The translations under genes and the position numbers were made by a program. From positions 1 to 21,522 of the forward strand of contig JBHGNT010000528.1 of assembly GCA_043228905.1 (NCBI GenBank): DNA of 21,522 nucleotides, read 5' to 3'. The stretch is from Azolla caroliniana (lineage: Eukaryota > Plantae > Polypodiophyta). The stretch's first letter is position 1, and each line of letters begins with the position of its first letter. Under the pieces are notes generated by a model. That model searched no databases, had not been told where the DNA came from, and saw nothing but the letters and a program-made list of their open reading frames with translations. Shown here one piece after another: positions 4,856 to 21,522 of the stretch.

Positions 4856-7800
4856 GGAGGGACCTGTCTCCCAACACTCACTACCAATGGAGAAGCTTGA
4901 CAGAAGCAACTATGCATCTTGTTCTTACAATATGCACCAATATCTGTAGGGACACGGGTACTATAGTTATGTCGATGGAGAAAATGAGGTAGCATCGGAG
5001 ACAGCACACAAGGACTTGCCAGCATGGGAGCAAGTAGCGAGCAGAGTGCTATATTGCCATGCGTCTTGTGTGCAAGATCAGATGCTCGGCTACATCAGAG
5101 ATGCAAAGTCGTCGAATGAGGCCTATGAAAATCTCCGAAAGCTTTTCGCCGCCAGTACCCCAGCCCGTAAGTTGCAGTTCTGGCAAGAGCTCAACAACAC
5201 CCGATAGAGAGACATGTTGGTTACAGACTATACCACCAAGGTAAACGAGATCTGCGACGCGCTCGGCTCCATCAACATGACGGTGGACGAAGACGAGATG
5301 GTGCAGATTTGCCTCGGTGCTCTAGCGTAGAGGTGTGCCGATACCGGAATGACCAGAAAAGGATCTGAAACCGGAAAACCGGAAAAGGGCCAGCCTTTGT
5401 GATGAAACACAAGGCGAACTCAATGAAGAAGAGCACTCCCGAATCGGAGGAAGTGTGGTAAGTTGACTCCGGAGCATCAAACCACATGACGAGCCACAAA
5501 GAGTGGTTCTCATGTTTGGAAAAACTAGAGCAATCGGGAGTTGTGAAAATCAGAGATGACACTCCTCATCCGATCGATCATGTCAGAGAAGTCCCTTTGA
5601 GTCATTTCGGACAAAAGGGAAAGTTGATGAATGTACTACATTTTCCGATTGATCATGTCAAAACCTCGTGTCGGTTGAACAGATCACCGACCTAGGGATG
5701 GAAGTGCGGTTTACGCGCCTCGGGTGCTTCATCAAAGAAGAGGTCCAGATCATCATGCAAGGGCACTAGGACGGGAGGATGTTTATCCTCGACACCAATG
5801 ACGTAGGCACTACTTTATTCTCAAAAGGACTGAAGGCCATGTCAATTATCAAAGGTTTTAGGACTTGTAGTCGAAACAGGTTGTATTCGGATTGCCAGCA
5901 TTTGGTGGTTGGGAGGCCCAAATCTGTGAAGCCTACCAGCTTAGGAAGCAACAACGGTTTCTGTTCCCCACTGAAAGAAACGAGAGTCATAACAAGCTCG
6001 ACTTCATTGATGAAGTGTATGGAGACTGGGACAAAATGTTAGTCTTGGTGGGAGTCGATATTTTGTCTCCTTCATCGACGACAACAGCCGACACACATGG
6101 ATCTATCTCATTGAGAAGAAAAGTGAGGTCTTTGAAAGTTTACGAAGCCTGCAAAGTCTTGTTGAACAGGAAACAGAGAGGAAGATCAAGTGCTTGCGGT
6201 CAAATAGCGGAAAATAATACTTTTCTGTCCAATTCAACAATTATTTGCAACAAAAAAGAATTTGGCGGGAATGCAGTTGTCGATACACACCGGAACAAAA
6301 CGACATAGCCGAGAGGAAGAACCGGTCGATTGTTGAGGCGGCACGGGCAATGCTGGAAGAGAAGAGCATGCCCAAGTGTGTCATCATACGAGCTGTATTT
6401 CGGGAGGAAGCCAAATTTACGACACCTGCGGATATTCAGTAGCATAGCTTATGTGCATGTATCGGATGAGAGGCAGAGACTGCTAGAACCGAAGTCGGAG
6501 AAGTGCATATTGGTTGGTTACTCACATGAATAAAAGGGGTATAAGTGCTATAACCCCCAGGCCAAACAAAGTTCGAGTGAGTCGAGATGTCAAATTCGAC
6601 AAGTCGGCATCATGTTACTCTCTACCGACTTCGACCCCCCAACTCCGACCCAATTCCAGAGAATGAGTCCAGTGAGCCCGAAACGACCCGAGCAGAAGAC
6701 GAAGAAGGATTTGGTACTCTAGACGAGAGTCCGATCTCATTCTGACTGAGTGGGCCGAATGAAGAGCTGAGTCAAAAAGACTAGCAAGATGAAGAGCCAA
6801 CGAGTAGTGGAGACTCTGACATGCTCTCCCCATGCAAGGAACGAAGGAGACGATGGTTCACACGAAAGGAGAAGGAGAAGAAGAAGATGTCGGAGTACGA
6901 CAATGGCATAGATGAGTCAAATCAAAGAGAATCCGATTCTGGAATGAATGAAGACGGACCTTCGGGAACGAATGTCGAGTCGGCCAAGAAGGCCTTGAAA
7001 TCAGCTAATGAGAAATTACGTTGATCGACCCACCAGAAGAACCCTGTAAAATGGTACGGTTATAAAGTATACAAGGCGCACCACATTGTGTACATGAAGA
7101 AAGTGGTAGGAGTGCGTGAACCAGAGAGCTACGCAGAAGCGACAAAAGACGCAAACTGACATGCCGCGATGGAGGAAGAAATGCGGGCACTCGATGCCAA
7201 CAACACCTGGGACCTGGTTGACCCTCCCTGACATTACAAACCAATCGGTTGCATGTGGGTGTACAAGGTAAAGCACAATGTTGACGGTTTGGTCAACCGG
7301 TACAAGGCCTAGTTAGTTGCCAAAGGATATGCGTAGACCCATAGAATCGACTATAATGAGACCTTCACTCTGGTAGCAAAGATGACGACAATTCGTGTGG
7401 TGTTGGCGGTTGCTGAGGAAAGGGGATGGCATCTTCATCAAATGGATGTGAAGAATACGTTTGTTCAAAGGCAATCTTGATGAACAGGTCTACATGATCC
7501 AGCACCCCGATTTTCAGTCGAAGATGAACAAGTCGGTAGTTTGCCGAATCAAGAAGTCACGTTTTGGACTAAAGCAAGCCCCCCATGCCTGGAATTAAAA
7601 AATAACTCATCGGTTGCGTAAGATGGGGTTTGCGGCTCTAAGTCTGATTCGTCGCTATTCATCTAGAAAGTTCTGGGAGGTTCGGTATGTGTATCTTGTT
7701 GTATGTGGATAATCTAGTCATCACCGGACACGAACTCACTGAAATCGACAAAGTAAAGTCCCAACTGTTGGACTCATTCGAAATGAAGGACCTGGGGAAA

Positions 7801-9204
7801 CTTCATTATTTCCTCGGGATCGAAGTGATCCATACCCATGTTGACATATTGCTCTCACAACGACACTATGTGTTGAATATGTTGTACAAGTTCAGCATGA
7901 CTAACTGCCGACCAATGTCCACACCCCTGGACTGGAACCTGAAGCTTCGTCTCGACTTTGGACCTACCTACAATGAGAAAGGGTTTCGACAAATTGTCGG
8001 AAGCCTCATCTATCTTACAATCACTTGACTTGACATAAGCTATTCCGTTGGGATGATAAGTCAATTTATGCAGAAGCAGACCGTGGAGCACCTCTAGTGC
8101 GTGCACCGAATACTCAAGTATGTTCGCGGCACTAAGGACCGGGGAGTGTTATACCGACATGGTATAACCGAAAAGGTAGTCGATTATACAGATGTTGACT
8201 GGGTCAGTGACACGTCGGATCGTCGGTCCACATCTGGTTATACGTTTTCTCTGGGTAGTGCGGTTGTTGCACGGAGTAGTAAAAAGCAACCAACAGTGGC
8301 TCTGTCGAGCATTGGGGTTGAGTATCAAGGCACTACCATAGTCACATATGAAGCCATATCGCTTCGGAGGCTGCTGTAACAAGACCTTCGGATCAAAGTA
8401 TCGATTCCGATCCCGATCTACTATGACAACATGAGTAGCATGCAGCTGGCCAAGAATCTCGTGTTTCATGCTCACACTAAGGACATTGAGGTGCATTATC
8501 ACTTCGTGCGCGAGCGGGTCCCCAGCGGGGAAGTCTAACTTCGGTATTGTCAGGCGGATCAGCAAGTTGCCGACATTTTCACCAAGGCACTCGGAACTAA
8601 CAAGTTGTAGCACTTTTCGGAGATGCTTGTTCTTCAGCATCTCAACGTGCCACACTTGAGAGGGTGAAAGGAAAAAGAGGAAACCAAAATGGAAGTCGAG
8701 AAAACCGGCAAAGGCACCGAACAATTAGTCGGAGAGAAGGAAACAACCAAAACAGGGGGAGACAAGAGGGAAAAGGGAATGGAGCCAACTGAAGAAGTTG
8801 GCAGATCCGAAACAGTCGAAACTAGCGATAACAACGTCAGAGTCAAGAAGGACAAAGCCAACCGGAAGAAGAAGGCCAAGACCTGAACATGGTCTGATGT
8901 GGTAAAGGACCTAAAGATCAAGAGTGAGTTGGAGACAACCAACTTAGACAAGAGGGAAAACAAATCGGAGGCAACCGATTCGGTTCAACAGTTTGATTCG
9001 AAGGAGCTGGATCATTTGAAGGCCAAACAGACTAGAAGGCAACGGAAATCAACACCGACACGGAGGAAGCTGCATGTTGACCAAAGTCACAGTAGCGAAG
9101 GAGCTCAGATGGGCCTTATGAGCAAACAAGCCGACCGAGAAGGTCGAGGTGGGTGGAACCGGATGGCTACCGGAAAGCGAGACCGGACGGGTCGGGGAGC
9201 ACGA

Positions 9205-10400
9205 TGTCGTGTAGATTTTCGGCGATAGTGTGAAACTTGTGAGGAACATACGAAATCGAGTGTGGTTCTTCTCACGAAATATAAAACAATAATAGTGAAG
9301 ATACTATTTTAAATAAGTTTAATATCTTGGTACAAAAACATGGAGGTCTTGAATAGCTTTTGAATACACTTTGCTACATAACAAATGAACATCTAAGTGT
9401 CAAGTTATGTGGGTATGAAGTTTGCAAAGAAAAAGAGAAAAATAAAAAATTGTGAGATATCCCACATAGACAAGACAAACAAGGATCTCACCATATATAA
9501 GGCAAAGCAAAAGCTATTATCTCTGTGTTTATGTGTGAAGAATAGAAAGGATGAATGGAATGACTTAATGAATGGATGTACTCAAGTTCATTGCTTTTGG
9601 ATGGCCACAGAACCGACCGGCTGGTGACCGGCATTCAACAGATCCGGCAACCGGTAACCGACCACCGACCGGTGTCGGCATACCCGGTTACTGGCATCCA
9701 GCGACCTCAGGATGCGGACCGAACCGGTAACCGGAGACCGACCGGTGTCGGCAAACCCGGTTACTAGCATATGACAACCTCGGGATGCGGACCAAACCGG
9801 GCCATACCGAATGGATGTAAATCGGATGGATCGGTCGGGTCGATTGATCGTGGTGCTGGTGTTTTAAAGATATTTGGTCCAAAAGCCTAATAGTATTTTG
9901 TGCTTTAAAAGGTATGTAAGCAAGACTTGAACCTTACACCTCCAAGGTAGAAAGCAATATACTTACCACTAAGCCAAGTCATTTCCTTCAAGTTATATTT
10001 TTATCATTATAGTTTTACTTGAAAAATTCCCATATGAGAGCTTAAATGAGTGACATGGTTATCATGCATCATGCATTTTATGCATGTCTTGTACCCCACA
10101 TGCATCATATGCATGGGGGCATCTATAAAAGAGTGGATGAAAAAGAAAAACAAGCTATGTATGATTCAAGAATTTAAGGAGAAGAAAATTTGTTATCCAA
10201 TTGATGGTGTATCTTGTTTCTTAAGTCTAAAGTCAAGGGTTCAATTTTAATCTTTCTCTCTATCTCTCGCTCGCCATATAAATCTCTCTCTTTCAATCTA
10301 TCTTAAATACTTTCTTGCTAAACTAGTGCAAACTTTGAATCCTTCCAGTCCAGGACCCCGGTGGTTCCGCCTCACGATCCGCACATAGTGACGGATCTTC
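9205..10400 (+). repeat. 5' LTR of the Gypsy element (3' terminus and PBS apparently deleted)
   Basis: Starts TGTCGTG, the reverse complement of CACGACA. Shares tgtgagatatcccacataga (9452) with 12529, and ccgc-tcacgatccgcacatagtgacggat with ~13965-13996. The expected terminal cacgaca is missing. Two 73-bp tandem units start at 9650 and 9723. Confidence 0.75.
9924..9976 (-). promoter_or_regulatory. tRNA-like Pol III internal promoter (A box + B box) within the LTR
   Basis: Minus strand TGGCTTAGTGG (9976-9966) matches the A box and GGTTCAAGTC (9933-9924) matches the B box, with tRNA-like spacing. No convincing cloverleaf. Confidence 0.5.
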
Positions 10401-10622
10401 GGTTTAAGGCCCACACGGTCCTGCCTAAGTCTCTCCTGCACAAGCGGAACAATGCGACACCGTGCCGTAGAGCTCGAGGGTCAATTTGATGGGAGGAACG
10501 TTACGAAGTTCCTTGACGCATACAAAAGGGAGATGAATCAAAGGGATGTGTCTGAAGCACGGCAAATCACAAGTTTCAAGAGAGTGGTTGCCAACAACAT
10601 CCAAAGACGTGTCATCGAGCTT

Positions 10623-11501
10623 CAGGAAGGTAAGACAATATGGTCCGAGTTCGAGAAAGCGATATTAACGGAGTTCGCGACAGAAGACTCGACGAGGATG
10701 ACTCAACATGCCCTAGTGAAGTGGATAGAAAAGAAAAATAAGAAGATGAGCACCTCGAGGGTGTACGACGAGTTCGACCAAATGTTTAATCGTCTCCCTA
10801 ATACGGACCAACTGCTGCTTGAGGAGGACAAGACTTTATACTTCTTGAAAGTCATGGACATGAAGGATAGACGAGAATTGGGGACTCTTCTCGAAGACAA
10901 TACCCAAGCAAATGGCAGGAAGGTAAGACAATATGGTCCGAGTTCGAGAAAGCGATATTAACGGAGTTCGCGACAGAAGACTCGACGAGGATGACTCAAC
11001 ATGCCCTAGTGAAGTGGATAGAAAAGAAAAATAAGAAGATGAGCACCTCGAGGGTGTACGACAAGTTCGACCAAATGTTTAATCGTCTCCCTAATACGGA
11101 CCAACTGCTGCTTGAGGAGGACAAGACTTTATACTTCTTGAAAGTCATGGACATGAAGGATAGACGAGAATTGGGGACTCTTCTCGAAGACAATACCCAA
11201 GCAAATGGCAGGAAGGTAAGACAATATGGTCCGAGTTCGAGAAAGCGATATTAACGGAGTTCGCGACAGAAGACTCGACGAGGATGACTCAACATGCCCT
11301 AGTGAAGTGGATAGAAAAGAAAAATAAGAAGATGAGCACCTCGAGGGTGTACGACAAGTTCGACCAAATGTTTAATCGTCTCCCTAATACGGACCAACTG
11401 CTGCTTGAGGAGGACAAGACTTTATACTTCTTGAAAGTCATGGACATGAAGGATAGACGAGAATTGGGGACTCTTCTCGAAGACAATACCCAAGCAAATG
11501 G
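10623..11501 (+). repeat. Tandem triplication, 3 x 293 bp, in Gypsy gag
   Basis: Units start caggaaggtaagacaatatgg at 10623, 10916 and 11209. They are nearly identical; copies 2 and 3 share GACAAG where copy 1 has GACGAG. Confidence 0.97.
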
Positions 11502-12342
11502 GCTTGTAGCGGACTAGATCAAGGTGAAGCGAGCATGCAATAGGCTCGACAAGCGTCGTCAATGGGTTGATGACACCGACTTGGCGGGAGACTATCACGG
11601 AGAAAACGAGACAACCGAAAATAGCTGAGCAACCCAAACAAAGTAACCCGAAAGAAAAGAAGATCAACGACGACATGATCGAAGAACTAGCAAAGAAGTT
11701 CGAGATGGTCACGCTAGCCAACATGAATCGTCGAGGGCCCAAAGGAAAATAACCCTTTAGATGTGTGTGGTGCGATAGCATGGACCACATGAGAAGAGAT
11801 TGTTCGAGACGCCATTCGACAAAATATCGTGTACATGGATGGCAACATGATCTGCTCGAGTGAGACTAGGAGACCCCTGCGAGTGAATTTCGGAAGAGGG
11901 GGAATGAAGAAAGCAATGGAGGATGCCGAGGCGACTCATGTGGATGCGATGCACTATGCTGCATTGGCCGGAATAAGAGTCGGGAAAGACAAAAATGAAG
12001 CTGCGAAAGTGGGAGCAAAGTTTTGGTCTTCCGTTCTCGAGTATGAGAATATGGGGAAGGTCACATCGAACGAGGTAGAGCTTGCGAACCGAAGCGTGCA
12101 AAGCATAACTGGGTGGTCGGATCTAGTGGATGACAACACCATACTCGCGGAAGTGATGTGCGACAACCACGAGTTGTTCGTCGAAGAAAAGAGAAAAAAA
12201 ATAGAAGAGCAAGGCCCATTAAAAAGACATGAAACAAGGAATGCAAAAAAGAAAGAAGATCCAGAAACGAGTGGAACTTTACAAATGGAGGAAGGAGACG
12301 CTAGCCAAAAAGCGGAGTCGATCAAACGAGTCAAAGAAACGG

Positions 12343-14006
12343 TGTTGTGTGGTTTTTCACACACAATATGAAAACTAGTAAAATAATTATTTAATATTAT
12401 CTTAATGTATTCATATAGATAGGTGTCTTCAAGAGTTTTATAGCGTATTTTACTACGCATGAAACGGATAAACAAGTATCAAGCTATGTGAGTGTGAAGT
12501 TTCAAGAAGAAGAAAGAAAAGACAAAACTGTGAGATATCCCACATAGATAGGACAACATTGGAACGTAGGATATATAAGAAAACCAAAACATATTCATTC
12601 TATCAATGTGTGGAACACAGAATGTTCAAGGTGACTTCGGCTACATTGTGTGGTGTGCACGCATCGGGCATACGCGTGTATGCACGGACGTGATTACGCT
12701 TCGGACGTATGTGCGTATGTGTGTATGCACGGTCGCGTTAACGCTTCGGGCATATGCGCGTGTGCATGGCCATGTGGATGTCTTCGGATGACACGTATGT
12801 GTGTATGCACGGTCGTGTTAACGCTTCGGGCGTATGCGCGTGTGCATGGCCATGTGGACGTCTTCGGATGTACGCGCGTGTGCAAGTTTTCGCGTGGACG
12901 TTTCGGACAAGCGCATGGATACATACACGGCGTGGTCAGGACGTGGTATGCACGGTCGCGTTAACGCTTCGGGTGTATGCGCGTATGTGTGTATGCACGG
13001 TCGTGTTAACGCTTCGGGCGTATGCGTGTGTGCATGGCCATGTGGACGTCTTTGGATGACGCGTATGTGCGTATGCACGGTCGTGTTAACGCTTCGGGGG
13101 TATGCGCGTGTGCATGGCCATGTGGACGTCTTCGGATGTACGCGCGTGTGCAAGTTTCAAGCGTACGCGTGCACGGTCGCGTGGACGTTTCGGACAAGCG
13201 CGCGGATACGTAAACGGCGTGGTCAGGACGTGGTATGCACGGTCGTGTTAACGCTTCGGGCGTATGCACGGTCGTGTTAACACTTCGGCCGTATGCACGT
13301 GTGCATGGCCATGTGGACGTCTTCGGATGTACGCGTGTGTGCAAGTTTCGGCCGTACGCGTGCACGGTCACGTGGACGTTTCGGACGAACGCGCGGATGC
13401 GTACATTGCGGCGCGGTCGGGACTTTTGCATGCGGACGAGCGCGCGGACGACCGCATAGTGTACGCATCCGCGCGCTCGTCCGCACACACGCGTGCAACT
13501 AAAAGCAGAGGCCATGCAACTAAAAATAGAGGCCATCCGACTAAAAGTGGGCATGCAAAGTAACATTGGGGAGGGAGGATCAACGAGGAGTTGGATATAT
13601 GTCCCATTTTTTCCCTACTAGTTTTTTTTTCCCCTCTTCCTTCTTCTTCCCTTTGGGTTTTCGAGAAACAAATTATCTCACATATTGATATCAAACTCCT
13701 AGCTTTGGGGACTCGATCTTTCTTGTCAAAAATTATCTCTCGTATTCATATCGGACCACTCCTTGCATGGTTGTTGGCTCCTTTCTTTGAAAAAATAATC
13801 TCTCATTTCCATACCCAACCCATTGTAACACGATTCTGAAATTATAAAGAATCGATTTTCTTTTGCAATAAAGGAATGATTTGTCTCTCCCACTTGTCTT
13901 ATGCTTAAAACTTGCTTGTGTTGTACGTGTTGCACTAAATCCTTCTAGTCCAGAACACCGGCGGTTCCGTCTCATGATCCGCACATAGTGACGGATTTTC
14001 ACGACA
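12343..14006 (+). mobile_element. Solo LTR (1664 bp) of a related Gypsy family
   Basis: TGTTGTG...CACGACA termini with a 4-bp TSD ACGG (12339-12342 and 14007-14010). Excision restores the in-frame gag ...RVKETVRPMKIGVEDP...YKLRSDIE. Confidence 0.92.
12650..13500. repeat. Complex CpG-rich, purine/pyrimidine-alternating minisatellite inside the solo LTR
   Basis: Core gtatgcacggtcgtgttaacgcttcggg recurs at about 12723, 12803, 12947, 12991, 13071, 13233 and 13262, with a higher-order period of 268 bp. Confidence 0.9.
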
Positions 14007-15206
14007 ACGGTTCGGCCCATGAAGATTGGTGTCGAAGACCCCGCTCGAAAGACAAGGACTGTGTGTACTTATAAGCTAAGGTCGGACATAGAGTAGACGA
14101 CAGACCTGAAGAAGATTCTTGAAGAACGCGTTCTTGATAGCCACGTGACTTTGTCCTTCAGGGAATTACTCGGCATTACGAAGAAGGAGTTCCTTGACAC
14201 GATCGTGGACCTTGTAAAAAGAAAGAGGCAACAATCGGACGAAGAAGAAGAGAAGCCACAAAAAGCAAAGACAAATGCCATAATGATGGCAAGGGACGAA
14301 GTTGATGAAGATATGGTGGACAGCCACTATACTCGACCTCATTGGGCACGAGCGACGACGGAAACGCCGGTGAAGATCGGGGAGAAGAAAGAGATTGTGG
14401 TAGCCTTGATCGACCATGGCTCGGAGATCAACCTCATGTCAACCGAGTTCTACAAAAAAGTAAGATGGCCTATCAATACAAACCACGGATGGAAGATTTG
14501 AGTGGCAACAAAGTCTACGGAGGACTTGTACGGAGCTTGTCCCAATGTTAAAGTCACGATCGGGGATGTGGAGATGGATCAACACTTTCGTGAAAGAATC
14601 GGCGTCGCATCCTGTCATCCTAGGACAATCGTATATCACATCATCCCGGATGGAGACCAAGGTGTTTGATAATGGAGCAGCCTTCGCACGAATCAAGAGT
14701 CTTGACAATCAAAGATTTGTTCAATTCCTAACGGTGCGAGCTAATCATGAAAGAAATCGAGATAGTCTTGCAGGCGAATCCCCGGATTTTTAGAGCGGAC
14801 TATTGAAGTATGGGGCACAAATAGTCCGAGCAATCACAAGTCCCCACAAGAAAATAGAGCATGTGGATTGCGAGGAGAAGCAACATGTGTCACACCTAGT
14901 GGCGCATGTAAACTAGTACTACCCGACAAGAAGGACAAGCATTGGATGCAAGACTTCGAGAAGATGCTGAAAGAAGAAAACATAATAGAAGAAGAGGAGT
15001 TCATGACCCATATTATGGAAGAAGCCTCATTTGAAACAGGTAATATGTCGCATTTTAAGAATACTACATTGAAAAAGGGCACAAAACCACGAAGTTTTTT
15101 AACATCTAAAAGTAATTTACAAAGTTTCAGATCATGTAGTAAAACGATCCCAAGCTTGAACCAAGTCAACATTTTAAGACATGTCTGATGGACTGGAAGA
15201 GCATTC

Positions 15207-16871
15207 TTACGTCTCATCCTCATCATCAGTGGCAATCAATGCATTATCTTTGTCCAATTCCAAGCCAACATCTTTTTGGTTATGAGAATTGCTTTTGGTT
15301 AGTCTCTGTATATTGTTTGATACCATATTTGGGATTTTCTCCTTTATTATCTTGATGGTGTCTTGGCTTAGATGGCCTGATTTTGTCAATGAGAAGTCGT
15401 ATACTAGTATGTCAACACGGTCTAGTGCAAGAGTAGCTGTGCTCGGTATATTCTTTCTTCTTCTCTTTCTGCTTGAACATCTGACATCCTTAACCATCTC
15501 TAAAGAATACTTTCTCGTAAATGCATCAGGTGAAGATGTCTGACACCAGTGGACCACAATTGACTTTGTCTGATTGCCTTCTTCATCTTTCACTAATTCA
15601 ATAATTTTTGCAATCCAAAATGGATGGCCCAAGTTATCAACCCCAGCTAATGTTGCGACCAACATTCCAACTTGTAATTCTTGCAAATTACCTTGCCATC
15701 TTGCCTCAACAATACGTGACTTTCTTGGTCCCACGTAAATATCTCTTTGCAGTGGTCGAACTAAATTATGAAGCTCTATATTATTCGATGGTTGATGATG
15801 AGTCGGCGATATCATTGATGGCACCCCAATATTCCATGTGAATGGGTTATGGATTGGCCAAAATCCGGCGATGTAATTATCTAAAATGGTGTGTTGATGG
15901 GTGAAGAAGATCTCCCACCATTCAACATCCTCATCACCAGTGTACTTCTTGGTGCGATCAATATTCTTTTGTTTCTCTTCAAGACATCGCAACCAATATG
16001 CCCTTTGTTCATCAATAGAACTATTGGGTGCCACATTTTTATGATCATCATATGGAATTTGTTGTGCACCATGCAGTGGTGCATCTAGGATATGAAGTAG
16101 GAGCCTACAACCTTCTTGGGGCTCCCATTGTGTACTAGATGAGTATTGTTTTGCAAACAACACCGTCATCTTGAGGTGGGCCGAGGTTTGTTTTATGAGG
16201 AAGACATGGTTGAAACTTATATTATTAAGAGGTGCAAGCACCCTACATTTAGTCTCATCACCATCCATGCAGAAACATTTAAAGTCGTACACTTCACTCA
16301 AGTGATGTACTTCAGGCTTTGGTGTATATGCTTCACTTATCAATTTTGATAGCGTGGTAAGCGTGAAGGAAGAGATTCCATAATTTAAAATGAAGAGATT
16401 CGCACAACATGTTTTGTTGAAGTCGCAAAGAAGTTGACGATCAGAACATAAAAAATTAAATCTCTTTTCACTAACTTGTCGAGGGATTCTTTTAAATACA
16501 AGTGGTTTACTAATACTACTATTATCTATAGAAGTATCGGACTCCGCTTCTAAGCTTACATGAAAAGGGCCATCAACAAGATCAATTGAAAAAAGAGAAT
16601 TCGAGGTACTAGGAGCCTCACTTTTCTATTTCTTACGCAAGCCTTTCGAATGTCTCTTGTAATCGTACTCTTCTATTGACAAATACGAGTTGTTGGACAA
16701 AGGAAAGGGGGCAATAGAAAAATAAGACGTTCTACTTGTAGAAGAATACATTCTCGAAACTATCAAGACAAACTCTATGGCACTACCATCAAAGGGCTAT
16801 ATACCAAACTCCTCTATAGAAAAGATTAAGGAACGTTGAATCTTTACTATATAACTATTAGAACTAGACAT
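15207..16871 (-). pseudogene. Putative transposase, probably internally deleted (DUF7869/Sola-like by recollection, unverified)
   Basis: One frame runs from ATG 16871 to stop 15207 (554 codons) with only two TAG stops (16797-16799, 16626-16628), extending the 378-aa ORF. Contains KTCCANL, then FTLTTLSKLISEAYTPKPEVHHLSEVYDFK..HVFLI..FAKQY..WEP and PFWIAKI..VHW..YSL..DFSLTKSG. No DDE catalytic core is recognisable. Confidence 0.55.
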
Positions 16872-17072
16872 GAGTTATTGGTTACACTATAACACTTTTT
16901 AGGAAGAGAAATTTCAAAAAACATTAATTAAAAATTAATTTTTATTTTAAAAAAACATATATATATATAATGAAGTTTCAATTTTCATTTTCATTATCGC
17001 GACAAAGAATCCATCGAGCTCAGACCACAGACTAATTTCAAGCACTCCGAAGCACTACCTCCGTCAGGCATC

Positions 17073-20000
17073 ATGAACAAGGGAAAGAAGATCGCCAGGT
17101 TAGCAATATTCTTTACATTTTTTAAGATTCTAAGAGATGCCTTAAAGATTCCTTTTCACAATAAGCAATAATCCCCAAATATTTTGTTAAGGAAACACAC
17201 CATCGAATTAAAATGCACTTAAACTTCACTAGATGGTTCAGGAGGAGTCATGTCACAATCAAGGCATTCAACCAAAATCCGATGCACTGCATCGGATTGT
17301 GGTTAAAAAATTGAGTTTTGCAGATAGAAAATTTATGTCCCTCATCACAGTTTTGTCATCATTTTGATACTATTTTTAGTGTTTTGCGTTTAATTGTTCT
17401 TTATTTTAGTGCTTTCTCCATCGTTTTTGTTCAAATAATATGGTCTTGTTCGTAATTAACCTAAATAGGATGTTGTCTTCATTTCAGTGACTCTCGTCAA
17501 AAAGTTCCTTCGTTTAAACTAAAGATTCACACTCCAACAAAGCGAGATTCTGACTCTTTTGTCAAAGATGTCTCTAGAAGAACTCTATTTGACTCAACGG
17601 GGGATGGAGCATCTAAGTCTTCTGTTACAACAACCAAAAATAGCAAGGGTGGGGCCTAGGAAGAGAAAACATCTAAACTTAAATATAAGAATTACCCAGA
17701 GTTAGAATGGTGTCTCTCTTATGTCGAGGAAGATGGGGTGCTACTCTTAATAACAGCTAAGTCAGACGGTAAAGGAAAATTGGAGCTTGGAAAAACATTT
17801 AACTATGGAGATGTAACCAAGCTAGAATATGAAGATAGTGATTCTTCGAGTATTATAATCGATGTCTTGATCTTTGTTGGCTCTAGACGATTGCGTCTTG
17901 ACGAGGGAAACCTAGTAGCAGAATGTTGCAACCCGAAGTCATTATGTAAAGACATTCAAACGATGAACAACTTATTAGTTGCACTGCGGTCGTATGTGAC
18001 AGGAGAAATGATGGGCAGTGAAGCACAAACTCCACCAAAAAAGTCTAGAAAGACAAATCCGGTTCATAAGAAATACAACAAACGACCACGACCCGACGAA
18101 GATGATGAAGAGGTTTTAGAATTTGTGGAGGAAGAAGAAGAGCACCAAGTCGACGTCATGGCTCCGGGAGGTCAACTATCTTCCGGTGTATTGACGTCTG
18201 AACAAAATAAAATAAGAGAAAATAGTGTTAAGACAAAACTTGTGCGTAAGGGGCAGTTGTTTCATTTGCCAATTACTTCAATCTAGAGACCTCCAATTGA
18301 TCCCTTGACTGGAAGACGTCCCCTAGAAATTAGAGGGTTGCACGTTGTCCATGTGCAAAACTTGAAGAGTAAAAGGAAAATTAATCCTCATGCTACTGTC
18401 GTGCCATTTTTAGTAATGGTCGATCAAGATCAATGTCCAACAGTAACAGACTTCAAGTATAGCTCTGTTGATGATTATACATATTATGTAATTGGAGGAT
18501 CGCATTCGGCTAAAGCTCGTAGACAACTTGTAAAAGAATACCCTCTCACCCCCTTCTTTAAGTACGCCGAATATAAAGTATATGTAGGACTCACTCACGA
18601 GGAGGCGAAGCTACTAGCATGGGACCATAACAATGATAATGATTATAAGCAAAAGATGTCATGCATTAAAAGGATGAGATTTTTTCATCATGAGTACCTA
18701 GATGCATTAAATTGTTTTGGCCCAAGGTTGTGGCCTGGTTTGCGTCGCTAGTGTTTACTGGAAGTGGGATTGCAGTGGATGAGAGCACAAAATCAGAAGG
18801 GCTATGAAAATATGATTCCTGGTCTCAACTAGCCTTTCGGACCGGAGAGGTGTGGGATCTCCAGGAAAAAATATTTAGCATGTGGGAGCGAAAAGAGGTC
18901 AAAGGGCAGAGGTCAAAGAAGGGAAGGATTGATCCACACGTTGAGATCAAATCGAAGTCAAAGGGCAAAAGCGACTTGGTAATCGAGGAGTTAGCAGAAG
19001 ACATGAAACTTTTACCTTGGAGGTCATTACAGGGTATTAAAGATGATAGGCTATTAATATCGGTGCTATCCCGAGTTGTTCCCAAGGAATTTAGTTTGGA
19101 CGAGATGGTTACTGAATTGCAAAAGTAAGGGTTTATAGTATACAATGTTTTAGGATATTCTTCTACTATTATTGATTTTTAATTTTTAATTTCATATATA
19201 TTGAATAGCCACAAGGTATACATGAAGATTCATGAGTTGATGATGCAAAAATTGAGTTTACCAACATGGGAAGAAGTGGAGCAAGCCTGCCCGATAACTT
19301 CTTCCTACAAGGCATTGGAGGAATATTTTATTGTTTTTAGAGAATGGGTATGTGTCATTTGAATGTTAATACATTGAAAGCTAATGTTCTCTCCTAACAA
19401 CATTGACACTTGCAGAAACCATTGAAATCAAAAAAGACCAACGACAATAATGATGGTATTCCAGCTGCCTTGATCACACACTTAGAACGTGCAAAGTATG
19501 AGAAGAGAACGACCAAAGGGAAAGAGATGGAACTGCCTGAGGATTCGGAGACTGTGAAGAGTTTTTTGCATAGGTCCAATCCTTATAAACAGTTACATTA
19601 TAGTGTATTTAATGGGGAAGTATCACAAATGCTCGATTTGTTACCGAGAAGGCACTACACTTTGCTGATAGCCAACATACCATATGGATTCCGAATTGCG
19701 GGATCAACATATGATGATGTGCCTTTCAAGTACCCCCAAATCGAGAAGATGGTAAAGGATTTCGTCGAACTGACATTGGCCCCCTTGTGGAGGATAATCA
19801 TATTCCATAGCATGGGGCAATCACTGTCAGCCACAACAACTCTGAAGTCACGTTGTCATGCCATTGAACACGTGCATTGGTGTGTCACAATTTGTTTTTA
19901 ATCATTATGATACTTGTTATTATATGTTGACATTCATACCTTTAAAACATGATTTTATTTCTCTGTAGGATTAAAACAAATATTACACATAGCCCTGGCG

Positions 20001-20671
20001 ATCGAATGGTTACTATGATTCAATAACAAAGAAGAAGGCTAGAGCACATGTCAACGAGCGTAACGTGGTAAATTATATCATGTGCCCAGCTGTCACAAAA
20101 AAATTAAGGCATGTTTCAGGTGATAAGAGTATGGTGAATCCTTATCAAAAACCTCAAAGATTGATCAACCGCCTCCTAGAGCTCTTCTCGAATCTAGATG
20201 ATTGGGTCCTAGACTTGTTCTCTGGCATAGGTATATAAAATATATTTACTTTGATTTCTGTCGATCAAGTTTAAGCCTTTAATTCTTATATATACGTGTT
20301 CGTGTTCATGCGGCCATTAGGTACTACAAACAGCTTGTGCATTGAAGATGTTTCGAAATTGTGTTGCGTTGGAGAAGGACCCTGCACAAGTTAACTTCAT
20401 CAAAATGAGGATCACAGGAATCTGGGACTATCCAGATCAGGATCAAGAAGTTGGAGCTAAGCACATCAATGAGACAGAGATGTTCCAAATGACTTCACGA
20501 GAACCAATGGAACCTATTGATGAAGAAGCAGGGGAGCTTGTGGACCTAGAAGATGTAACACAATTTGAACATACATCAGATTCAGGAGAGTGTGGAGATG
20601 ACACAAACGAGAATAGTCTAGAACAATCAGTGCCTAAAGAGCCTAGTGTGCCAGATTTGCTTATAGATTGA
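17073..20671 (+). pseudogene. Spliced ParB/Srx-like domain + beta-class DNA N6-adenine/N4-cytosine methyltransferase (~980 aa reconstructed)
   Basis: Exons 17073-17098, 17233-17301, 17488-19124, 19209-19347, 19416-19879, 19969-20230 and 20321-20671; all introns are GT-AG and phase-consistent (the first two exons are less certain). ParB-like YVIGGSHSAKAR (18485-18520) and YVGLTHEEAKLLAWDHN. MTase motif IV LLIANIPYG (NIPY 19674-19685), WIKTN, VNPYQKPQRLINRLLELFS (from 20134), and motif I WVLDLFSGIG|TTTACALKMFRNCVALEKD. Lesions: stops at 17657, 18284, 18749 and 18805; frameshifts near 18769, 20005 and 20329. Confidence 0.88.
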
Positions 20672-20805
20672 TTTAGATGGCATAATGTATACTTTGAGTA
20701 TTTTTGAGGCATAATGTATACCTTGACTTGATATTGTTTTTGTATATGAGAACAAAAGTAATCGTTTACCATTTAATTTTATTCACCCGTTCATAATTTC
20801 ACTAT

Positions 20806-21332
20806 TTAATCATTTTTTGAACTGTAATTTGTATATACATATGATTGGTCACCATGCTCTTCTCCAGTTTGGGGTATTAACATGATATTATACTTTCCCA
20901 TTTCTCCTAGCATGATTATATACATGAACTTGTGAATGTTCTTGATAATAAATGGTTTTTTGTTTGCTATGTTCCAAGTCTGTTGGTTTCAAATATTATA
21001 AATGAACGTGGTACATAATTGTTACTCTTACCAATTACATTGTGATGGATTATATGACATTATACAACGAAACTATCGATATACCCATCCAACAAGTGGG
21101 GGACTACTTTTTTCCTCAACCCTAAACCACATATTAACAGTTATGGTTTATGTAGTTTTACTCTACAATTTGAATATGCATACCAAATAAAGATGTTTAA
21201 TATTCAACCTAATATTCAATTGTACTCCAGGATATACAAATTGACACGAAAACAAGACGTATACAATTCACCAAATGCTTGGATTTTATTTGGTTCTATA
21301 TTTCACCATCCATTCGCAAAATAGGTACGCAT
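20806..21332 (-). pseudogene. Small two-exon gene of unknown function inside the TIR element
   Basis: Intron 21122-21183 (GTATGC...TTTAG on the minus strand) joins ...EPNKIQAFGELYTSCFRVNLYILEY...IFIW to VEEKSSPPLVGWVYR...MGKYNIMLIPQ. About seven internal stops. Start uncertain. Confidence 0.35.
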
Positions 21333-21430
21333 GCATTGTACATTTTTGAAATCATGCTAAATTAGGATACTTTTCTGCATCTCACCAACTATGGCAAAAG
21401 AGAATACGACATATTACCTGTTTCAAATGA

Positions 21431-21522
21431 CCCGGTGTTCAAGATCTTCAACCCATCAACAAGGTGACAATTTGAAATGCTGGAATCGGTCCGAGCGTGG
21501 ACGAATTTGTCGAGGCGTTTGC
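21431..21522 (+). pseudogene. Gypsy reverse transcriptase fragment (continues beyond the window)
   Basis: Translates to VQDLQPINKVTI*NAGIGPSVDEFVEAF, matching the Gypsy RT N-terminal 'D(L/Y)xxLNKVT...P..DE' motif. Confidence 0.85.

Follow-up and report, generated by a model that had tools for sequence, protein, structure and literature searches.

Does a plant DNA transposon carry, as an integral part of its equipment, a DNA amino-methyltransferase of the prokaryotic or phage type? The question is raised by a 21,522-nucleotide stretch of DNA from Azolla caroliniana (contig JBHGNT010000528.1, called the window below, always at its full length), in which a minus-strand transposase-like gene and, diverging from it, a plus-strand gene for a ParB-like methyltransferase lie between terminal inverted repeats (TIRs). 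We consider it likely that positions 15027-21439 of the window are a dead, internally deleted copy of a cut-and-paste DNA transposon of ~7.6 kb, and that in intact copies the methyltransferase would act on the DNA of the element itself.

The best inverted pair in positions 14000-21522 has arms of 28 nt (15027-15054 and 21403-21430) that are 96% complementary, their first 24 nt perfectly so. The TIRs noticed in a preliminary description of the locus are thus real, and the limits that it proposed for the element, 15027-21430, hold for the start of the left arm and fail at the right end. When metagenome contigs were scanned for a 17-base piece of the repeat, 119 stretches came up, from which the extended terminus was then required; one human-gut metagenome contig with a chance 17-mer match (L053) was excluded from all analyses. 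In these contigs 62 ends, with 59 different flanks, carry AACACCGGG and then TCATTTGAAACAGGTAATATGTC. The nine outer positions of this terminus are each conserved in 48-57 of the 59 ends, and conservation breaks off sharply at position -1. The occurrence of one terminus next to 59 distinct flanks indicates many independent insertions of the family. Since the 59 ends carry nine further outer bases, the right end of the window copy lies at 21439, and its left end lacks those nine bases. The 37-bp terminus is paired in two relatives, L005 (6.4 kb) and L080 (7.6 kb), both of which are closed at both ends, while the window pairs its inner 28 bp only. L080 is a near-intact relative, 81-91% identical to the window copy. 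Thousands of short contigs in four public runs, under three organism labels, cover the element at 85-100% identity, which agrees with a multi-copy family. Two pairs of contigs (L040/L096 and L054/L083) have identical flank and terminus and probably represent one insertion per pair, the contigs of the second pair coming from different samples. At one end of another contig (L071, 3616-3760), the terminal repeat is present as three partial copies in tandem.

The same divergent pair is present in seven other loci (L001, L002, L005, L007, L008, L009 and L012), with a gene of the DUF7869 family on one strand and the methyltransferase pieces in the same order on the other. Four of them (L001, L002, L005 and L008) are plant genome-skim contigs from ENA assemblies. 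The others belong to the fern Ceratopteris richardii (L007, chromosome CM035423.1), to the liverwort Riccia sorocarpa (L009, chromosome CM100794.1), where an annotated 856-aa N6_N4_Mtase protein is encoded beside a 1076-aa DUF7869 gene, and to the chlorophyte Cymbomonas tetramitiformis (L012). In L005 and L080 the window's own repeat stands at both ends of the pair; in L001 the pair lies between 34-nt repeats that have the core GAAGAACAGGYAATAT in common with the window TIRs; and in Riccia it is bounded by a different 32-nt inverted repeat, in an element of ~11 kb. Long inverted repeats at the Ceratopteris locus aligned in many registers, offset by multiples of 4 bp; they were taken to be short-period tandem arrays and left out of account. 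Homologous TIRs therefore bound the same gene set in L001, L005 and L080, which upholds the family of TIR transposons with an integral prokaryote/phage-type amino-methyltransferase gene put forward in the preliminary description. The gene order, for which it suggested a comparison across species, is the same in Ceratopteris, Riccia and Cymbomonas. Its bryophyte host is unsupported, the closest named relative of the transposase being that of the fern Ceratopteris. Judged from this distribution of sequences, the gene pair is old, having been kept from a chlorophyte alga via a liverwort to ferns. The Riccia element is flanked by two annotated genes with Ion_trans and EF-hand domains (L009, 1-3804 and 24013-24286), and its left end adjoins an assembly gap.

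The transposase-like gene of the window is an open frame of 472 codons (16625-15210) inside the TIRs, related to DUF7869 proteins at up to 71% identity. The call of a minus-strand transposase-like gene was thus correct, for a gene that is incomplete. Full-length relatives have ~870-930 aa, and alignment with one of them, the 912-aa P0135, indicates that residues 131-500 are gone, including all three conserved acidic motifs (D363, D444 and the GHTH..D486 motif). The relatives match DUF7869 with E ~1e-51; in a Pfam search with the 472-codon frame, the tail of DUF7869 was found below threshold only. Among 34 aligned members, taken from plants, algae and animals, IIDGMDQ (D363) is nearly invariant, and LQLDNTxRENKN (D444) and GHTHxDIDQ (D486) are invariant. 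The last two acidic residues are separated by 42 residues, which makes for a compact core. An AlphaFold model of P0135 has a predicted local distance difference test (pLDDT) score of 73.8, mostly above 85 in the core, and places D363, D444 and D486 on a strand, a strand end and a helix, as in RNase H-like transposases. In a VIA-align comparison of residues 297-518, Mos1 has Z 9.1 (175 residues aligned, root-mean-square deviation 3.6 Å), the SETMAR transposase domain Z 8.8 and Sleeping Beauty Z 7.4, with IstA, TnsB and retroviral integrases lower. Foldseek concurs on a transposase core, with weak E-values. These structural scores are middling and speak for the fold, not for the function. On this basis, the core of the relatives, not of the window copy, is predicted to be RNase H-like, with three acidic residues, and nearest to mariner-type transposases.

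The likeness to Tc1/mariner elements lies in these best structural matches and in the compact core. The family differs from them in the lack of a sequence match, the lack of a TA duplication, a length of ~900 aa and the presence of a domain resembling BAH domains. Residues 723-839 of the P0135 model match the BAH domains of SHL, EBS, DNMT1, MTA1 and ORC1 (Z 7.2-5.7, root-mean-square deviation ~3 Å), with no Pfam hit. No Pfam transposase family, including Tc1/mariner, matches the full-length relatives by sequence, searches of PDB with sequence profiles gave no match for the transposase or for the methyltransferase protein, and an ESM Atlas search with the transposase remnant returned nothing usable.

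The plus-strand gene extends from ~17504 to 20668 in exon-like pieces, with frame switches from piece to piece, and all searches, alignments and fold comparisons were made with single exon pieces or with natural annotated proteins. The ParB-methyltransferase gene of the preliminary description is borne out, in pieces, one of which (19993-20235) scores above the Pfam cut-off for N6_N4_Mtase (30.4 bits versus 26.7, E 4.8e-7); a full-length relative, P0041, reaches 65.7 bits. In L005, L007, L008 and L001 the boundaries of the pieces coincide, in keeping with conserved introns. Annotated proteins of Ginkgo (Gb_37443, 670 aa), Chara (GBG66685, 699 aa, and GBG86584, 1825 aa with two units) and Adiantum have the same order of a ParB-like part, a middle region and a methyltransferase domain; a word-indexed search with the Ginkgo protein found Ginkgo paralogues only. 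In a Diphasiastrum complanatum protein (P0027, KAJ7514498.1), a cytochrome P450 domain (residues 2-294) is fused with a homologue of a methyltransferase piece (297-437); this protein is probably a gene model that engulfed a transposon fragment. As for the possible third gene, no long frame was seen in 20669-21402, a segment that, apart from the terminus, cannot be aligned with L005 at the DNA level; it aligns with L080, which is no test of coding.

In the window and in all relatives, motif IV lies upstream of motif I, which is the permuted order of beta-class amino-methyltransferases. Motif IV reads D-[IAFL]-P-Y-G in the family and N-I-P-Y-G in the window, the first proline being replaced throughout. 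D/N-P-P-Y/F is typical of adenine-N6 enzymes and S-P-P-Y/F of cytosine-N4 enzymes. The leading D therefore makes us lean, short of proof, towards N6-methyladenine (6mA) rather than N4-methylcytosine (4mC) as the probable product.

The piece at 18287-18748 was modelled from 13 homologous segments (pLDDT 68.6). In VIA-align, where each row stands for the best chain of one PDB entry, its 22 best rows all have the ParB/Srx fold (Z 6.6-3.4 over 59-100 residues; ParB, PadC, Noc, KorB, sulfiredoxin and SbnI), and unrelated folds start from Z 3.1. We assign it, with moderate support from this model, to a ParB/Srx-like domain. Box II of ParB proteins is expected after the second strand, where the piece has a conserved GG-S/G-H-x-x-E-A-R-R; an arginine of this motif may correspond to that of the GxxR of Box II. 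The N-terminal half of the Ginkgo protein gave only leads below 0.9 in the ESM Atlas, one of which is a phage ParB_N cluster.

Is the methyltransferase gene of use to the element? Between the window and L080, the ratio of nonsynonymous to synonymous differences per site (pN/pS) is 0.06-0.18 in six pieces of this gene and 0.29 in the C-terminal part of the transposase. Between subfamilies, pS is saturated and pN is 0.07-0.25. By these measures, the methyltransferase gene has been under strong purifying selection throughout the history of the family. A gene kept by selection serves its element, which argues against a passively captured fragment. The two sides of the window copy are unevenly related to L080: the transposase side (15099-16367) is 91% identical without gaps (pS ~0.2), and the methyltransferase side (16376-21439) is 81% identical with many gaps (pS 0.3-0.5). 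Either recombination between subfamilies took place, or L080, a high-coverage contig, is a mixture.

The window copy itself has decayed. The deletion in its transposase gene is accompanied by lesions in the methyltransferase gene (Table), among them three premature stops, and by N instead of D in motif IV. All three stops are TAG, and L005 has CAA at two of them. From the sequence, this copy is dead, with the catalytic core lost, three stops and a frameshift in what is a methyltransferase pseudogene, and a clipped left terminus. As both genes are broken, it can neither write any mark nor move by itself, and such activities of this very copy are ruled out. The methyltransferase domain is also damaged in L001 and L008, and the compared pieces of L005 and most of those of L080 look intact.

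The spacer between the divergent genes is AT-rich (32% GC), as the preliminary description had it, and with coding starts at 16751 and ~17504 it spans ~750 bp instead of the proposed ~200 bp. It harbours a palindrome that is found at the same place in L080 and whose unit is tandemly repeated in some contigs of other copies, with joints stepping back 38-41 nt. Arrays of related palindromes with the core GTCGATGC...GCATCGAC are found in L002, L007 and L008, and variants of them in L005, and in Riccia this intergenic place is taken by a different palindrome cluster. The only exception among the subfamilies viewed is L001, where no palindrome was found in the 186 bp scanned. We propose the spacer palindromes as candidate binding sites for the ParB-like part, by analogy with ParB and parS and with what has been proposed for red- and brown-algal elements. 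Intact relatives have 37-bp TIRs and a divergent pair of genes, one for a DUF7869 transposase of ~900 aa and the other, split by introns, for a protein with a ParB/Srx-like part and a beta-class N6_N4 methyltransferase. In intact copies, the ParB-like part may take the enzyme to the palindromes of the intergenic spacer, where it would methylate the element's own DNA, more probably at adenine N6 than at cytosine N4, and the mark might tune transcription or transposition of the element.

Table. Parts of the element and lesions of the window copy, with positions in the window
Feature	Position	Strand	Basis or remark
Left TIR, inner 28 nt only, without the outer 9 nt AACACCGGG	15027-15054	.	inverted-repeat search; 59 distinct flanks
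Transposase, C-terminal part (P0135 residues 501-898, 71% identity)	15177-16370	-	alignment
BAH-like domain	~15354-15704	-	fold match on P0135 model residues 723-839
Internal deletion junction; 1,112 bp of L080 (1701-2812) absent	16370-16377	-	L080/P0135 alignment
Transposase, N-terminal part (P0135 residues 1-130, 42% identity)	16377-16751	-	alignment
AT-rich spacer between the divergent genes, 32% GC	16752-17503	.	base composition
41-bp palindrome, CGATGCA-T-TGCATCG core	17267-17307	.	same place in L080
Methyltransferase gene, N-terminal region, homologous to gene starts of L005, L008 and L002	17504-18283	+	alignment
Premature TAG	17657-17659	+	methyltransferase N-terminal region
Premature TAG	18284-18286	+	CAA, CAC, AAT, AAC in L005, L007, L008, L002
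ParB/Srx-like domain (moderate support), GGSHS at 18494-18508	18287-18748	+	fold comparison
Premature TAG	18749-18751	+	CAA in L005
1-bp deletion, frameshift	18765-18766	+	relative to L005 and contigs of other copies, which do not share it
Two conserved pieces between ParB-like and methyltransferase domains	18808-19125, 19183-19359	+	alignment
Methyltransferase domain, first half, motif IV NIPYG at 19674-19688	19407-19898	+	alignment
Methyltransferase domain, second half, NPYQKP at 20137-20154, motif I DLFSG at 20212-20226	19993-20235	+	Pfam N6_N4_Mtase
Final conserved piece of methyltransferase gene	20321-20668	+	alignment
Right TIR, complete 37 nt, ends in CCCGGTGTT	21403-21439	.	inverted repeat; 59 flanks; L080 alignment reaches 21439

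How new is such an element? The impression that it does not belong to a described family was wrong as to the kind of element. In Ectocarpus, the 21.5-kb Sola1-1_Ec32 encodes its transposase on one strand and a ParB-like/DNA methyltransferase on the other, and comparable proteins were cited for transposons of green and red algae (PMC12477816). The two-gene layout is the same, and its authors propose that the protein binds and marks its own element (PMC12477816). The likeness is one of layout, as published, and the two differ in size (21.5 kb and a 1104-aa protein there, ~7.6 kb and ~670-860 aa here) and in host (a brown alga there, green plants here). Plavaka, Zisupton and Mutator elements of red algae have the accessory genes PAG2 and PAG3, with a PF01555 methylase and a ParB-like domain (10.1101/2025.02.11.637652). 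They share with our family the presence of both domains on a transposon, arrays of inverted repeats beside the ParB-like gene and a proposed self-binding or self-modification. However, PAG2 and PAG3 are two proteins, a methylase joined to a SET domain and a ParB-like domain joined to a 2-oxoglutarate oxygenase, borne by other transposase superfamilies, whereas here there is a single protein and a DUF7869 transposase. Fusions of a ParB-CTPase-fold module with PF01555 are also frequent in phages and prophages (10.1101/2025.10.10.680097). Their domain content is the same, and the plant genes differ from them by introns and an extra conserved middle region. In a tblastn search against phages, the match was marginal, covering ~90 residues around motif I at 37% identity (E 2e-4).

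Prokaryotic-type amino-methyltransferases are likewise found in eukaryotes as Marchantia DN4MT1, bdelloid N4CMT and the enzymes borne by DIRS retroelements. DN4MT1 and N4CMT differ from the present enzyme in being host genes reported as 4mC writers, and the methyltransferase domains of DIRS elements, for which inactivity is predicted, fall in a different group (PMC4738411). Our literature search found no mention of DUF7869 and no description of this design in land plants. The element is thus a land-plant representative of a kind that was described in 2025 from brown, red and green algae, not a new system. What is new here is the BAH-like domain, the age of the gene pair and the selection on it, and a defined terminus.

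Several observations weigh against the reading that we prefer. No target-site duplication was found in the three complete copies L001, L005 and L080, searched for direct repeats of 2-4 bp, and with the left end of the window clipped as well, the footprint of cut-and-paste insertion is missing. The replacement of the first proline in motif IV (D-I-P-Y) makes activity and base specificity unreadable from the motif. No Pfam ParB family matches 18287-18748, the ParB-like call comes from a middling model (pLDDT 68.6, Z 6.6) with Foldseek E-values of ~0.1 or worse, and the binding of this protein to the palindromes is something that we purely infer. The element was found in no RNA run, so that expression and splicing are unseen. 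Lastly, within 10 kb no methyltransferase accompanies a DUF7869 locus of oyster, and no DUF7869 gene accompanies one methyltransferase gene of Chara. The pairing is therefore not universal, and is typical of green-plant elements rather than of every DUF7869 gene.

The superfamily is affected by the same gap. Readings of 2, 3 and 4 bp and of TA, TTAA and AWWT were compared for the window, L001, L005 and L080, and none fits. In the flank profile of the 59 ends nothing stands out but a weak T at -1 (26 of 59), and AWWT does not appear, with the caveat that flanks in low-coverage genome-skim assemblies may be chimeric. A long direct repeat between the window flanks was also considered as a duplication, and is no better than chance. 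A 4-bp AWWT duplication is the described hallmark of Sola1 (PMC3845634), and this hallmark is absent from the flanks of L001, L005 and L080 as well as from the 59-end profile. A possible kinship with Sola1 has only indirect support, from the two-gene layout shared with Sola1-1_Ec32 and from the occurrence of DUF7869 proteins in bivalves, where Sola1 has been reported.

Could the enzyme serve another end than the one that we propose? One alternative is that it writes 4mC, not 6mA, and that host 4mC enzymes, Marchantia DN4MT1 for instance, derive from this family. PF01555 includes both N4C and N6A enzymes, and Riccia sorocarpa, in which the family is multi-copy, is a relative of Marchantia. MpDN4MT1a/b, moreover, reportedly group with beta-class 4mC enzymes of prokaryotes (10.1101/2021.02.12.428880). 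Nevertheless, no Marchantia protein occurs among the 30 of 118 matches whose source names were looked up. Given also that motif IV leads with D (N in the window), which is adenine-type, we find this alternative unlikely. The bolder proposition that this transposon-borne ParB-like methyltransferase lineage gave rise to domesticated land-plant enzymes like DN4MT1, with intact copies still writing 6mA or 4mC, strikes us as quite unlikely. The methylation could also couple transposition to replication in a Dam-like manner, ends or promoter being inactive when fully methylated and active when hemimethylated, instead of serving self-marking or protection from silencing. There is a bacterial precedent, since Dam methylation regulates IS10/Tn10 and IS50/Tn5, and a methyltransferase selected beside the transposase, with shared palindromes upstream, would suit such a role; however, no methylation target motif was identified in the TIRs and nothing in the data bears on timing, and we give this possibility only a small chance.

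The remaining alternatives deny the gene its role or the element its ends. Plant transposons often capture fragments of host genes, and the methyltransferase could be a recently captured host gene (Pack-type cargo), or a neighbouring one, without any role for the element. Yet the gene occupies the same divergent position in subfamilies that share only 30-56% identity in their transposases, and in hosts as far apart as a chlorophyte and ferns; in four elements it is enclosed by the TIRs, and it is under purifying selection. Shared position, enclosure and selection together already contradict a capture, which we hold to be highly improbable. That this is a piece of something larger, a virus-like or giant element, with the 28-37-bp repeats internal to it, finds some encouragement in the 21.5 kb of the Ectocarpus relative and the ~11 kb of the Riccia element. 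It has very little chance of being correct, as conservation stops sharply outside AACACCGGG in 59 contexts, both ends are present in L005 (6.4 kb) and in L080 (7.6 kb), and no further gene is seen within the repeats. A ~7.6-kb TIR transposon whose methyltransferase would mark its own DNA thus remains our preferred reading.

In the window, the element was described as nested in a Gypsy pol gene. This is weakly supported by motifs read by eye, a protease-like ALIDHGSEINLM at ~14400 and a reverse transcriptase-like INKVTI directly to the right of the element; no Pfam family was found in the adjacent flank, and the nearest retroelement domain recognised by Pfam is a Copia-type RVT_2 at 7687-8028. 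It belongs to a Copia-type pol on the plus strand (5447-8598; RVT_2 E 2e-19, and a blastx match to a Copia polyprotein from L004), and a second gag-pol fragment lies on the opposite strand (1414-2526, minus). At 10392-11514 (plus), a stretch of ~100 residues (...EGKTIWSEFEKAILTEFATEDSTRMTQHALVKWIEKKNKK...) recurs in overlapping frames, which suggests a tandem duplication, without any Pfam match. Between the Copia element and the Gypsy-like flank, a GC-rich block at 12579-13560 (up to 55% GC) has many repeats translating as ...RVHGHVDVFGCTRVCKF... and resembles a tandem repeat array. Rfam had no match in the window.

DNA-modifying enzymes aboard transposons are a recently recognised theme, with TET/JBP proteins in fungal elements and methylases with ParB-like proteins in those of red and brown algae. 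Our analysis now places the ParB-like/methyltransferase design in land plants and in relatives from Ginkgo to Chara, and shows that it is of ancient standing in the green lineage and maintained by selection. To the transposase it adds a domain resembling the BAH domains of chromatin readers. The intact candidates, namely elements of the L080/L005 type and the Riccia genes, would bear on the methylation of plant transposons other than 5-methylcytosine and on the origin of the liverwort 4mC writer.

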